DNA from: Zancudomyces culisetae HAW-14-8
Taxonomy: Eukaryota; Fungi; Kickxellomycota
Assembly (NCBI GenBank): GCA_052426225.1
Contig: JBNJNM010000021.1
Coordinates: 2,418,001 to 2,482,000 of the forward strand
Direction: 5' to 3'
Length of the DNA stretch: 64,000 bases
Shown here: positions 46,919-52,259 of the stretch, one piece after another
Position numbering within the stretch: position 1 is the first letter of the stretch
How the letters are laid out: each line of letters opens with the position of its first letter
The notes under the pieces: model-generated
Seen by the model: only the letters and a program-made list of their open reading frames with translations
Database searches by the model: none
What the model was told of the DNA's origin: nothing
Position numbers and translations under genes: made by a program

Positions 46919-48040
46919 ATGGAAAACAAGAAAAAGAAACGAAATTTTAAAAGCTTAAAAATCGATCTGGAATCCGGGGAAGGCACAATAGACAAAGGAC
47001 TAGTAAAGTTGGAAGACAAAAATATGGGAACGATGAATTTTGAACGAGAAGGAAAAAAAGAAGATTGCGATGAAGATAAAGTGATACGGATAGGGTTCTC
47101 ACAGCTAGACATCACTGAAAAGGATATAGAAATCAAAACTAATGAAGAAAAATCTGTTCTGGGGGCAGGGGTTAGTGGGATGGTGTACCGAGTGAAACAC
47201 CGAGCCAGTGGAACACTGATGGCTATGAAAGTGGTAAAGCTGGAGCAGACTACGACAACAAGCACAGCACAGCAACTATTGAAAGAGCTGGAGATATTGA
47301 ATGAATGTAATTCTCCATTTATAGTATCATTCTACGGAGCATTTTGCAACATTGGTGTGAATATCAACAACGGTGGTGGAGGGGGAGGAGGTAGCAACAT
47401 GGTGAAAATATTTATGGAATATATGGATGTGGGATCATTTGATAGGATATACCGAAAAAATGGACCGATTCCAGTTACAGTAATAGGGCTAATGACATAT
47501 TCTGTAATCCAGGGACTGACATACCTATACAACACACATCGAATTATGCACAGAGACATTAAGCCATCAAACATTTTATTAAATTCAAAAGGATATATAA
47601 AACTGTGTGACTTTTCTATATCTAAGCAAATGGAAAGTAATAACAGCATTGCAAACACGTTTGTGGGAACAGCAATTTACATGGCACCAGAAAGAATGCA
47701 GGGGGCTGAATACTCAGTCAAGTCAGATGTGTGGTCACTTGGAACGACGGTTTTGGAACTTGCGCTGGGGAGACACCCATTTGGATTTCAGCAAACCAGC
47801 ATCTTTGAGATGATGCACTATATTTCGACCAGCGAAAAATTGTCCATCCTGGACCCAACTAAGTACGAAAAAAACCTGTGTAGCTTTGTTGACGGATGTC
47901 TGGCTAAAGATCCAAACACCCGTCCCACTCCAAATGCTCTTCTTGCTCACCCCTTTGTCTTGTCCCACTCTGACCTGTATTATAAAAATACCGAAAAACT
48001 TACCCTCCTCCGAAATTGGTTGAATTCCTTAATCCTTTAG
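46919..48040 (+). CDS. MAP kinase kinase, Ste7/Fuz7/Byr1 type
   Basis: Docking motif KKKRNFKSLKI, GAGVSG, AMK, HRDIKPSN, DFS, activation loop SIANTFVGT..YMAPER. Confidence 0.93.
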   Translation: MENKKKKRNFKSLKIDLESGEGTIDKGLVKLEDKNMGTMNFEREGKKEDCDEDKVIRIGFSQLDITEKDIEIKTNEEKSVLGAGVSGMVYRVKHRASGTLMAMKVVKLEQTTTTSTAQQLLKELEILNECNSPFIVSFYGAFCNIGVNINNGGGGGGGSNMVKIFMEYMDVGSFDRIYRKNGPIPVTVIGLMTYSVIQGLTYLYNTHRIMHRDIKPSNILLNSKGYIKLCDFSISKQMESNNSIANTFVGTAIYMAPERMQGAEYSVKSDVWSLGTTVLELALGRHPFGFQQTSIFEMMHYISTSEKLSILDPTKYEKNLCSFVDGCLAKDPNTRPTPNALLAHPFVLSHSDLYYKNTEKLTLLRNWLNSLIL

Positions 48041-48182
48041 TGTAGATTTCCTTTAAATAAACATCTTCCTTTTTTGCATTTCTTGAATCATAATAAAAAA
48101 GGAGATGGATACATATACAACTGAAATACAAAATATTTATGGTGAAACGGATATACATTGATCCAAAGATATCAGTGTATAC

Positions 48183-49551
48183 ATTTCAAAGAGTAGTCTG
48201 AATTGAGTTACGACTCCATTAAAGGAAGCCGCCTTGCGTATCGCACTACATATTGTAATTACAACTACAACAAAAAAGGGTTCCCATATGACTCTTTGGA
48301 GGCTGTTTTTACCATCGACTTTCAAAACTCTTTTCTCGAGACTGAATTTCCCAGTACTTCAAGTATCACCACTTGTATCTTTATTCCATTGGATAACTCC
48401 CTCGACTTTGTAATATCTTTGTATTCCGGTCATGAAACCGGAGTGTTGGTATTTACAAACCAGAATAATAATGAAAACTATGGGGATTGGCGTGATTAAA
48501 TAAGCTGGTTTACGAACTATTCGTGTTTCGGATTGAATAATTGAAACTTTTATTTCATATTCTATACCTGCATTCACTCTCTACCCGAAAGCAGGAAGTG
48601 AAATAAAATATAGAAATCAACAAAAGTTATTTGTTTAAGTTCCAAGGTGTAACGACTTCCACTCTTATAGACGATATCAGATTGTATGACAAGGTAGCAG
48701 TTAAAAAGACAAAAAGATTTGACCCCGCTTCATTCTCTTCCCTCAGTTTACCCTCCCTCATTTCTCCTCCCTTATATTTCAAAGGAAAGTGAAAGGAATT
48801 TGAATAATATAACCAAAGGCCTCTTCGATAAAAAGAGGTGTCAAAACTTCTTGTATTTCAAACTCCCCTTGAGCATAAATCAGACATGCAACTATTAGGA
48901 GACGGATACCCTTACACCAGAACATAAACATATTCATCAAAATACAAGAAAAATCCTAGATGTAAATCAACAGATTCTACACATTCAATCACCACACCCG
49001 CCTTCATTCTTTCCAATTGTGAAACATCCAAAACAACGGTCATGACCAAAAATCCGAAAATAAGGCAAAACCAAGAAAATTAAGAAATAAAGAGCATGGC
49101 AATACTTGAAATGCAGGCAAATTGCAGAATAAGAAAAAAGCCACATTTTCTGGTAACGTCTAAAAACAAGCCCCACAAATGCGTATACATCACGAAGGGT
49201 TAACCCTGACTGATTTAACAGGGTTCTCATCAAGAGCCTTCATTAACACAACATATAAGCACAAGAGCCACTTCATATACTTTCATATATAAAAGTAACC
49301 CTCTCGTTGTAGTTTTTTCTCAGACCTTCCCAAGGGTAATTAAAAAAACAACACATTTAATGTCTTGTTATGCGTTAACCCCTAAATATTGACGCAAGCT
49401 TCTGACCGTTTACTAAATATTTTGATTTCTAGTTATTATACCCGCCAACTTTTTAGATTTAATCCTTTTACAAGAAAAAATAGCAAGGATTCTAAAGGTC
49501 ATCCATACCAGGATAAAAAATATTAAGGAATTTAAACTCTCTCTTTAAAAT
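48183..49551 (-). ncRNA. RPR1: Nuclear RNase P RNA, unusually long (~1370 nt)
   Basis: CR-I GGGAAGGTCTGAGA (49331-49318), CR-IV AGTCATATGGGAA (48293-48281), CR-V AACTCAATTCAGACTACTCT (48209-48190). P4 is GTCTGA/TCAGAC. An 11-bp P1 pairs ATTTTAAAGAG (49551-49541) with CTCTTTGAAAT (48193-48183). P2 is TTCC/GGAA. Many G-U-containing hairpins lie on this strand. Confidence 0.85.
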
Positions 49552-49846
49552 TTTCGAAAACCGCTCTTTTATTTATGCAATATCAATATTCATCGATCCA
49601 AAATCAGAAAAAAATTCGTAATCACACACCCATAAAAATAAGATATTCGCAGAATATATGAATTAATTAATAGCCACCCTCTACTCATCTCAGAAATAAT
49701 AAAGAAAAAGTAATCCAGAGAGAAAAATGTCAAAGACATTTACCAAAGTCTGGTTTTTTTTGTTAGAAATACAAAGCAAATATACATCCGCATAAAACGA
49801 ATGAGAGCTGCACAATACCACCGAAGATCACAATAAATTTCTTGCG

Positions 49847-50036: not shown

Positions 50037-50279
50037 AGATATAGAGATACTTACTCTTATCCTGTGGGATCAAGACAGCACTCCGCAATTGAAGACAAAC
50101 TCCCACTCATGCCTTTTATGAATTCCCTTATTCTAATCTCACTTTCTAGCCATTAACCTAATAACGCTAGGTAAGTTTAAAACAATGGAAAGCATCATGT
50201 CAAGGTAAAAGAAGAGTTCATTAATTTAATTTATCATATTTAATTTTGTCACTTTTGCCATTTTTGGGGAAGAGAAAAT

Positions 50280-50909: not shown

Positions 50910-52259
50910 CTAAGAGAACTCGAAAAAATTAAAACTGTAGCCACTAGGTTTGGAGTGCGAAACACCTATATCTTTAGGGCAAGGGTCATTGGGAGCAGAG
51001 GGGGTAAGAAATGATAGATTAGTAGGCCTCAGCTCAAGTTTTTGGATCGGATAGCATATTTTTTGATTGTAGAAGAGATATGGCTTATTGTCATAAAAAA
51101 TTCCATCCATTCTGCCAGATTTGCGGTTTAAAATCAAATAATAAAACCCATCAATAAACATCTGGGACTCAACACTGGAACCCTTGATATATCCTGTTTC
51201 TTTTATTCTGATAAACAAGTAATTATCAAGTTCTGAGGGCATGTACCTTCCCCTCCATTCCGGATCGAATGGTGTCGTAGACGTAAACCAGAAACTATCA
51301 TCTCTACCTGCGTTGCCACTCCTAGGGGTTTCAAAATTATGTGGGTTCAAAAGACTCCAGTAGGCCAAATCTGTATTTGTTGACGCGCCCCATCGTCTAG
51401 TCCATTGGTCAAAATTCCTAAAATCAACTATTTCACCACTAAACTTTGTTATGACTTCTCTGGCATACCATGGGATATTAAACATTCGTAACGAGCCACA
51501 TAAAACGCCGTTTTCAATATCAACCTCTTCTAGTTCTATAATTACACTCCACTTTGCATTTCTTCTACCATCAACCATCGTGGAATAGCTGATATCTGGT
51601 ACGTTCATTAGCCTTGAGTCGTTCAGTATCTCTGTGTCGGCATTTATCAACCTTTGTACCCCCTTGAATCGGATGCCTGGCCGTAAAAACGACGAATTCA
51701 ATCTCCTCAGTGGCGACAGCCCGCGCGGTATATTTCCAAGGCTGTTTTCGTTGAGCTCGGTTATTTCTGTTACTATTATAAACTCATCTGGCGGAGTAAC
51801 AGATCTAGTATAATCAAACTTTAATTCGGATAGCAAATCTTGCAGAGCGAACTCTTGTCTTGAACTCGTTCTATCTTCCGAGAGGGCTATGTTGGTATGG
51901 GTATCAAGTGCTCTGCTGCTATTCTCTACTATATCTGTATCGCTATCCCTCTCATTGGAAAATTCTTCGGGCGAGAAACTTTGGTTAGTATCAGTAAGTC
52001 TATTATCGTACCCACCTCTCACTTCGATTGCTTGTACACCATCATTGATTTCAAACCTCCAATTTCGATTGTAGATTATATTTTGCCCTCCAAAAATATC
52101 GGTTTCTATCTCCATCAATCCAATACCCTCATTTTCAGTGGAAAATTCTGAACTATATAGTAAGCGCCTTCTAAGATCTAATCTGTCTTCTAAAGCGGAT
52201 TGCTGGTCAACTGGTTCTTCTTCTGGAATCCTTGATTCTGTATTGTTAAAAATTGACAT
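50910..52259 (-). CDS. GID/CTLH complex substrate receptor Gid4/Vid24-like
   Basis: SFLRPGIRFKGVQ, WSVIIELEEVD, LCGSL, TKFSGEIVDF, DLAYW, YLFIRIKE, GFYYL..R.SG...GIFYD...Q.LEL. Confidence 0.85.
   Translation of the reverse strand: MSIFNNTESRIPEEEPVDQQSALEDRLDLRRRLLYSSEFSTENEGIGLMEIETDIFGGQNIIYNRNWRFEINDGVQAIEVRGGYDNRLTDTNQSFSPEEFSNERDSDTDIVENSSRALDTHTNIALSEDRTSSRQEFALQDLLSELKFDYTRSVTPPDEFIIVTEITELNENSLGNIPRGLSPLRRLNSSFLRPGIRFKGVQRLINADTEILNDSRLMNVPDISYSTMVDGRRNAKWSVIIELEEVDIENGVLCGSLRMFNIPWYAREVITKFSGEIVDFRNFDQWTRRWGASTNTDLAYWSLLNPHNFETPRSGNAGRDDSFWFTSTTPFDPEWRGRYMPSELDNYLFIRIKETGYIKGSSVESQMFIDGFYYLILNRKSGRMDGIFYDNKPYLFYNQKICYPIQKLELRPTNLSFLTPSAPNDPCPKDIGVSHSKPSGYSFNFFEFS

Follow-up and report, generated by a model that had tools for sequence, protein, structure and literature searches.

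Nuclear RNase P RNAs of kilobase size have previously come from one yeast clade only. The RNA of Candida glabrata reportedly carries three insertions, which amount to about 700 nucleotides (nt) in total, and this kilobase RNA is said to be full length in the active enzyme. With 1149 nt it was termed the largest described (PMC3001073); the RNA of Nakaseomyces delphensis has 1368 nt, and other non-coding RNAs are likewise enlarged in Nakaseomyces (PMC3847288). The tip of helix P12 is a common and recognised site of RNase P RNA expansion (PMC12974513). A second case, from an early-diverging fungus of the insect-gut type, is described here in a stretch of 64,000 nt from Zancudomyces culisetae HAW-14-8 (contig JBNJNM010000021.1, positions 2,418,001 to 2,482,000), referred to below as the window. 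Its minus strand from about 49424 to about 48129 is likely to be the sole nuclear RNase P RNA gene of the genome, with P12 grown to a rod of about 820 nt. The predicted RNA of about 1.3 kb is three times the size of those of its relatives, and nearly all of the excess lies in helix P12. For neither Harpellales nor Kickxellomycotina did the literature searches yield a paper about nuclear RNase P RNA.

A kilobase-sized nuclear RNase P RNA at this place had been proposed from the letters of the window alone. This original prediction holds in its interpretation, on the separate covariance scores of the two halves (34.4 and 20.8 bits) and on synteny with Smittium. Among its observations, the core elements and the P type stood, and the P1 helix, the ends, the placement of conserved region IV (CR-IV), the share given to P3 and the length had to be replaced.

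Identification as nuclear RNase P RNA

When the whole window was scanned with Rfam, a single match was obtained, to RF00009 (nuclear RNase P) at 48393-48180, with 28.8 bits at a gathering score of 28. This full-length alignment was compressed to 214 nt, with 103 model positions skipped and a degenerate CR-I (GGGAAAuucaGUCUcGAGA) taken at low posterior probability. RF00009 was searched on contiguous pieces separately, namely the whole window, the 3' half and two 5' pieces. The 3' half alone (48320-48181) reached 34.4 bits (E 5e-9), which beats the compact alignment, and thereby exceeds the membership threshold of 28 bits, as does the whole window. The 5' part (49409-49280) gave 20.8 bits with a normal P3, a GAAGCU block and an exact CR-I; on extension to 49128 the piece scored 17.6 bits, and P8 (GGCUCUUGAUGAGAA), P9 and CR-II (GUUACCAGAAAA) were aligned at top posterior probability. 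The compact alignment thus looks like a forced compaction with a spurious CR-I, which arises because GGGAAAUUCAGUCUCGAGA in the rod lures the model. The latter sequence (48334-48352, minus strand) forms part of the 3' strand of the rod and is similar to CR-I as well as to CR-V. The expectation that a size-limited covariance search would mishandle the gene was borne out, and standard covariance annotation would misreport a real gene as a threshold-level match of 214 nt.

CR-I (= GGGAAGGTCTGAGA) and CR-V (= AACTCAATTCAGACTACTCT) were found on the minus strand in the predicted order, at 49331-49318 and 48209-48190, and P4 between them is complementary (CUGAG/UUCAG, 5/5 pairs). CR-IV is followed by a hairpin and then by CR-V, whose core AAUUCAGACUACUC is an exact match at 48204-48191, and the ends are closed by P1 and P2. 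The module of the specificity domain, in which P7 encloses P8, P9, P10/11, CR-II, P12 and CR-III, was likewise recovered, with CR-III ambiguous. That the RNA is of the P type and not of the MRP type was confirmed from both sides: RF00030 (RNase MRP) had no match in the window, and the true RNase MRP RNA, of normal size (383 nt, 92.1 bits), was located on a separate contig (C13:1135469-1135851). The identity and the architecture of the gene as a nuclear RNase P RNA are stated with high confidence.

The genome searched comprises 27.09 Mb in 25 contigs, and CR-I, CR-V motifs and RF00009 matches occur in it at this locus and in a near-identical copy on contig C19 only. C19 (159 kb) is collinear with the window from 9732 to 64000, over more than 50 kb, at 97.9-99.9% identity. 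Every gene of the collinear stretch, the RNase P RNA included, is present twice in the assembly. The C19 copy probably represents an alternative haplotype or assembly redundancy, or else a very recent duplication. Genes for RNase P proteins were detected in the genome, namely Pop1 (69 bits), Rpp30 (101 bits) and an Rpr2-like fragment (27 bits).

Relatives and the location of the excess length

In Smittium angustum, a 64-bit RNase P RNA (L003:11834-11404, about 431 nt) lies directly 3' of the orthologous MEK kinase and in the same orientation. In Mycoemilia scoparia, the RNase P RNA scores 72.9 bits and lies on the opposite side of the kinase, about 4 kb away. With P1 included, the two RNAs measure 431 and 411 nt. 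For the Mycoemilia RNA (L008:965-555, minus strand), the Rfam alignment begins at 877, and the CAGAAGCUUGCGU block with the P1 partner was found at 965-943; hence, its P3 region comes to about 110 nt and the RNA to about 411 nt.

It was observed that CAGAAGCUUGCGU and GAAGGUCUGAGA (the CR-I block) are identical in all three species, and that AGUGCGAUACGCAAGG and AAUUCAGACUACUC agree exactly with S. angustum and are one base each off in Mycoemilia. ACCAG[A/C]AA and UUGAAA are also present in all three species with their order kept. P1, P2 and P7 pair in each of them despite sequence change, with compensatory changes in P1 and P2. In the window, P1 consists of an inner part (6/6 pairs) and an outer part (11/11 pairs) with a small internal loop between them; ACGG/CCGU of the inner part is common to S. 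angustum, and the outer part has a different sequence with pairing kept. The corresponding helices are GGGGAGAACGG/CCGUUCUCCCU in S. angustum (11/11 pairs) and UUGGGCUGGC/GCCAAUCCAA in Mycoemilia (9/10 pairs). P2 (CAGA/UUUG) pairs 4/4 in all three species and reads CAGA/UCUG in Mycoemilia, a change from G.U to G-C. P7 begins 3-4 nt past CR-I throughout, in unrelated sequences (ACCUUG/CAAGGU in S. angustum, GCCGC/GCGGU in Mycoemilia). An alignment of the three full RNAs with MAFFT was reliable at the ends only, and the helices were therefore checked by explicit coordinates.

The distances between the conserved elements locate the extra length. From the 5' block to CR-I there are 62 nt in the window, 32 in S. 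angustum and 111 in Mycoemilia; from CR-I to CR-II the values are 163, 143 and 52 nt, and from CR-IV to CR-V 27, 21 and 26 nt, in the same order of species. The interval from CR-II to CR-IV measures 899 nt in the window versus 144 and 134 nt, and within it the P12 interval from CR-II to CR-III accounts for 821 nt versus 27 and 102 nt. Since only the interval from CR-II to CR-IV is outsized, the excess can be attributed to one expansion of P12. About 1 kb between CR-I and the 3' core had been noted correctly, whereas some 190 nt had been assigned to the P3 region; P3 spans only 49383-49332, and the excess belongs to P12. The catalytic domain (P1, P2, P3, CR-I/P4, CR-IV, CR-V) and the core of the specificity domain (P7, P8, P9, P10/11, CR-II, CR-III) are ordinary and follow the same order as in the relatives with their RNAs of 411-431 nt.

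No RNase P RNA was present in the DNA fetched for the synteny loci of S. mucronatum, S. megazygosporum, Martensiomyces, Coemansia spiralis, Dipsacomyces and three Logan contigs. In a metagenome scan, a CR-IV pattern matched by chance at five places, and an RNase P signal was absent from each of them.

Anatomy of the RNA and its surroundings

The features of the RNA and its flanking genes are listed in Table 1. The length would range from about 1267 nt, if P1 is limited to its inner part, to about 1316 nt, if an outer complement (18/21 bp) extending to 49434/48119 is included. The original prediction had set the ends at 49551 and 48183 (1369 nt) on the basis of an 11-base-pair (bp) P1 between 49551-49541 and 48193-48183. 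These strands do pair, yet a stem of at least 11 bp also turns up in 70% of shuffled flanks; this P1 was rejected because it is at chance level and would consume nucleotides of the P2 3' strand, and the P1 supported by homology gives the range of about 1267-1316 nt instead. CR-IV had been sought in AGTCATAT-GGGAA at 48292-48280, and both the covariance model and the two relatives place it at 48247-48232.

The P8/P9 arrangement of GGCUCUUG and CCUGUUAA is likewise present in S. angustum. In the window GGCUCUUG occurs twice, at 49269-49262 and 49238-49231, and the second alone aligns to the P8 of the relatives; about 58 nt ahead of the second are extra relative to S. angustum. S. angustum and Mycoemilia both have UUGAAA at the corresponding position.

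Table 1 Elements of the predicted RNase P RNA and flanking genes, with positions in the window
Feature	Position	Strand	Details
Predicted RNase P RNA, whole	48129-49424	-	about 1296 nt; Rfam RF00009, P1 pairing, inverted repeat
P1, 5' strand	49406-49424	-	outer CAAAAUAUUUA 49424-49414; inner AAACGG 49411-49406
P2, 5' strand, and CAGAAGCUUGCGU block	49392-49405	-	CAGA 49404-49401
P3, normal size	49332-49383	-	AGGGG 49383-49379 / CCCUU 49336-49332; covariance-model alignment
CR-I GGGAAGGUCUGAGA	49318-49331	-	= GGGAAGGTCTGAGA; includes P4 5' strand CUGAG 49323-49319
P7, 5' strand	49298-49314	-	17 bp with partner 48281-48263; free fold and explicit pairing
P8 and P9	49202-49238	-	P8 GGCUCUUGAUGAGAA 49238-49224; P9 AACCCUG 49225-49219 / CAGGGUU 49208-49202; covariance-model alignment
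P10/11, 5' strand	49161-49174	-	GGGGCU, GUUUUUA; partner 48311-48299; unconstrained minimum-energy fold
CR-II ACCAGAAA	49147-49154	-	top posterior against model ACCAGAAA; motif common to both relatives
P12 expansion	48326-49146	-	821 nt, CR-II to CR-III
CR-III core UUGAAA (putative)	48320-48325	-	UUUUGAAAGUCG 48328-48317; directly after P12 3' strand; assigned by eye
P10/11 and P7, 3' strands	48263-48311	-	P10/11 48311-48299; P7 48281-48263; free fold, explicit pairing
CR-IV AGUGCGAUACGCAAGG	48232-48247	-	high posterior probability; identical in S. angustum, one base different in Mycoemilia
CR-IV/CR-V hairpin (eP15 position)	48210-48232	-	helix in all three species, sequences differ
CR-V AACUCAAUUCAGACUACUCU and P2, 3' strand	48186-48209	-	= AACTCAATTCAGACTACTCT, 48209-48190; P4 3' strand UUCAG 48202-48198; UUUG 48190-48187
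Extra hairpin, P19 position	48151-48182	-	32 nt; between P2 and P1 on the 3' side; absent from both relatives
P1, 3' strand	48129-48150	-	CCGUUU 48150-48145; UAAAUAUUUUG 48139-48129
MEK-type protein kinase gene	46919-48040	+	flank of the RNase P RNA locus
Vid24-like gene	50910-52259	-	flank of the RNase P RNA locus

On the minus strand, the locus thus has a MEK-type protein kinase gene on one side and a Vid24-like gene on the other. The best matches of the kinase are from Smittium (55-59% identity), followed by Kickxellales, and hence the genome is that of a Kickxellomycotina fungus and no yeast. A look-up of the exact kinase protein returned no record. Two small open reading frames within the region of the RNase P RNA found no support from any Pfam family. 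The GC content of the window is 34%.

The P12 rod

An unconstrained fold of the RNA (1290 nt) recovered P1, P3, P7 and P10/11 (GGGGCU.GUUUUUA / UAAAAAC.AGCCUC) together with a near-continuous rod closed at 49142/48326 and with its apex near 48782-48773. The segments of the rod include helices of 17, 17 and 12 bp and a UUCG-capped side hairpin at 48628-48545. When the rod was folded alone, the minimum free energy in the sense direction was -265.4 kcal/mol versus -192.9 +/- 7.4 kcal/mol for shuffled sequences (z -9.8), and the antisense strand gave z -4.4; the structure is strand-specific. The pairing comprises 309 bp with a spine of 270 bp and involves 76% of the bases, and 52 G.U pairs were counted versus three A.C 1x1 mismatches. 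At the DNA level the inverted repeats in the rod region are short, and the genome holds no further copies of the rod beyond the two allelic ones and no repeat family. This pattern fits a structure maintained as RNA on the minus strand. A recent DNA palindrome and a repeat or transposon origin were considered for the rod and rejected on the shortness of the DNA inverted repeats and the lack of another genomic copy.

The helical interior had been described in part correctly: the UUCG hairpin at 48628-48545 was recovered, CCCUG/CAGGG corresponds to P9 (49225-49202) and GGGGC/GCCUC to P10/11. The UUACCA/UGGUAA pairing proposed with them is unlikely to be a helix, as its strands are CR-II and sequence adjoining P10/11.

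It is proposed that the RNA would assemble with Pop1, Rpp30 and other subunits and carry out the usual cleavage of 5' leaders from precursors of transfer RNA (tRNA). The rod would start at the P12 tip and point away both from the active site and from the CR-II/CR-III module that reads the T-loop; for this reason it may be tolerated in the manner of a ribosomal expansion segment.

Alternative explanations

Several points weigh against the preferred reading. The rod is without covariation support, and a single base (48863, in the rod) separates the two genomic copies. The excess of G.U pairs could partly reflect strand-biased mutation in a G/U-rich sense strand and not selection, and a near-duplex of about 270 bp could be a substrate of RNase III or Dicer. 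CR-III is ambiguous between UUGAAA at 48325-48320 and AUGGGAA at 48287-48281, the model having preferred the latter with UUGAAA cut off. PRORP was not found in the genome by a search that had no positive control. Finally, it is from the sequence that we infer that the gene is expressed, where the mature RNA ends, that the rod is kept and which polymerase is used. That the mature enzyme keeps the whole rod is regarded as fairly probable. Its removal from a genuine RNase P RNA is considered unlikely, either by a splicing-like excision with religation or by cleavage of the RNase III type; the latter would leave a two-piece RNA joined by P7, P10/11 and the base of P12, comparable to the intervening sequences of bacterial 23S ribosomal RNA. 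A near-duplex of 309 bp with 76% of its bases paired is an obvious target for a nuclease specific for double strands, its helix has a tip that the relatives can do without (P12 of 27-102 nt), and P7 (17 bp) and P10/11 (13 bp) are unusually long and could bridge two pieces. However, the G.U-rich pairing is kept along the whole 820 nt, beyond any basal cleavage site, and consensus splice signals are lacking at the borders of the rod, the sole internal GUAAGG (48915) being located in its middle. The kilobase RNA of C. glabrata, reportedly full length in the active enzyme, also speaks against removal.

Even less can be said for the two explanations in which the long RNA does not function. It is very improbable that the gene is dead, broken by an insertion, with tRNA 5' processing taken over by a protein-only enzyme or by an undetected second gene. 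The insert is very large for a functional ribozyme and T runs resembling terminators of RNA polymerase III (Pol III) occur inside, but this is the sole RNase P RNA candidate in the genome, its conserved regions and helices are all intact, Pop1 and Rpp30 are retained with no PRORP detected, and the insert, which is unique, structured in a strand-specific manner and neither repeat nor transposon, lies exactly at the variable tip of P12. That the real RNA is the compact molecule of about 214 nt at 48393-48180, with GGGAAAUUCAGUCUCGAGA as its CR-I and the upstream CR-I a coincidence, is given hardly any weight. This molecule is the sole whole-window match above the gathering score (28.8 versus 28 bits); nevertheless, the 3' half scores higher by itself (34.4 bits), so the pseudo-5' half costs score, and the 5' part has low posterior probability and is devoid of P3, P8, P9 and CR-II. 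The pseudo-CR-I falls within the 3' strand of the P12 rod, and an exact 14-nt CR-I, a canonical P3 and a CAGAAGCUUGCGU block identical to that of S. angustum stand 1 kb upstream, this CR-I being unique in 27 Mb apart from the C19 copy. A compact RNA is thus already disfavoured, and a long RNase P RNA with an expanded P12 is the preferred reading.

Transcription and possible intronic origin

The sense strand of the RNase P RNA contains nine runs of at least five T, up to T7, and one T7 run (49348-49342) is in P3, about 75 nt from the 5' end. In 26 of the 29 distinct tRNA genes, the first T run (T4-T8, mostly T4-T5) is found within 12 nt past the 3' end. A gene of the Pol III type, such as yeast RPR1 or human H1, would have no internal T run of terminator length, and the RNase P gene has several; given the nine internal runs, it is probably no standard Pol III unit. 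By eye, only weak and wrongly spaced matches to a yeast-style A/B box pair were seen in the 5' leader, followed by a T6 run. Transcription by RNA polymerase II (Pol II) would be the alternative, either from a promoter of its own or within the intron of a host gene. A transcriptome of Z. culisetae exists (PMC12611240). The locus may serve as a test case for RNase P RNA transcription where the Pol III route looks closed.

Splice-like signals, which are frequent in AT-rich DNA, were noted on the minus strand around the gene. Upstream are GUAAGU at 50054 and CUAAC at 49766 with a CAG ending at 49750, followed by the 6-nt ACUUUG (49749-49744) and GUAAAU at 49743; a UUUCAG ends at 48121, and no good branch-site match was seen near this 3' site. 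The RNase MRP RNA of the same genome seems to lie in an intron of a host gene with several introns. It is tentatively suggested, as a doubtful proposal, that Pol II transcribes the giant RNase P RNA as part of an intron, the host being a non-coding gene that resembles a small nucleolar RNA host; MRP RNA would be made similarly, the long P1 clamp would set the ends through exonuclease trimming, and the 270-bp rod would be retained in the mature enzyme. If true, this would extend intron-encoded RNase P RNAs beyond arthropods for the first time, and the helix expansion would rank among the largest single ones in any ribozyme.

Two further observations concern other RNA genes. In the flanks of the MRP RNA (G000:C13:1133969-1137351), a GUAAGG occurs 93 nt upstream and a CUAAC-N17-CAG ends 32 nt downstream; past the latter, a stretch of 60 nt is followed by another GUAAGU (flanked region at locus positions 1408-1976, MRP RNA at 1501-1883). 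Two tRNA pairs are probably dicistronic (C6:1309458-1309608 and C11:79082-79232), with genes 6-7 nt apart and no T run between them.

Comparison with known RNase P RNAs

Among the closest counterparts is the RNA of S. angustum, which has the same position and orientation beside the MEK kinase, the same order of P1-P2-P3-P4-P7-P8-P9-P10/11-P12 and identical sequences in the 5' block, CR-I, the CR-II core, CR-IV and CR-V. It differs in its length (about 431 nt), in a P12 interval of only 27 nt, in the absence of the hairpin at the P19 position, in a P7 of 6 bp in place of 17 bp and in having two T5 runs only. The syntenic orthologue of about 430 nt forms a natural pair with the giant RNA for asking what role the rod has, if any.

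RNase P RNAs encoded in introns have reportedly been observed in insects and crustaceans, and to our knowledge they come from arthropods only, not from fungi. The gene described here shares with them that the Pol III gene structure may be lost and that splice-like signals flank the candidate; it differs in that an intronic origin is here a tentative idea drawn from sequence signals, with no branch-site consensus near the 3' site.

With the RNAs of C. glabrata and N. delphensis, the RNA from the window would have in common a kilobase size, an ordinary core and an excess within the specificity domain. The lineages differ (Saccharomycotina versus Kickxellomycotina), as does the layout, which here is one P12 rod of about 820 nt. 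Furthermore, the inflation of non-coding RNAs is broad in Nakaseomyces, whereas the MRP RNA of Z. culisetae has a normal 383 nt. As the RNAs of the relatives have 411-431 nt and the lineage is unrelated to, and far from, the Nakaseomyces yeasts, the expansion is taken to be independent, in agreement with the original prediction. Kilobase RNase P RNAs would thus have arisen a second time, in a layout different from that of the yeasts, which suggests that huge growth at the P12 tip is something the ribozyme can tolerate repeatedly. The archaeal and eukaryotic segments ES5.1 and ES5.2 are inserted at the same P12 tip (PMC12974513); in the described lineages these segments are short, whereas the rod in Z. 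culisetae would extend over hundreds of bp.

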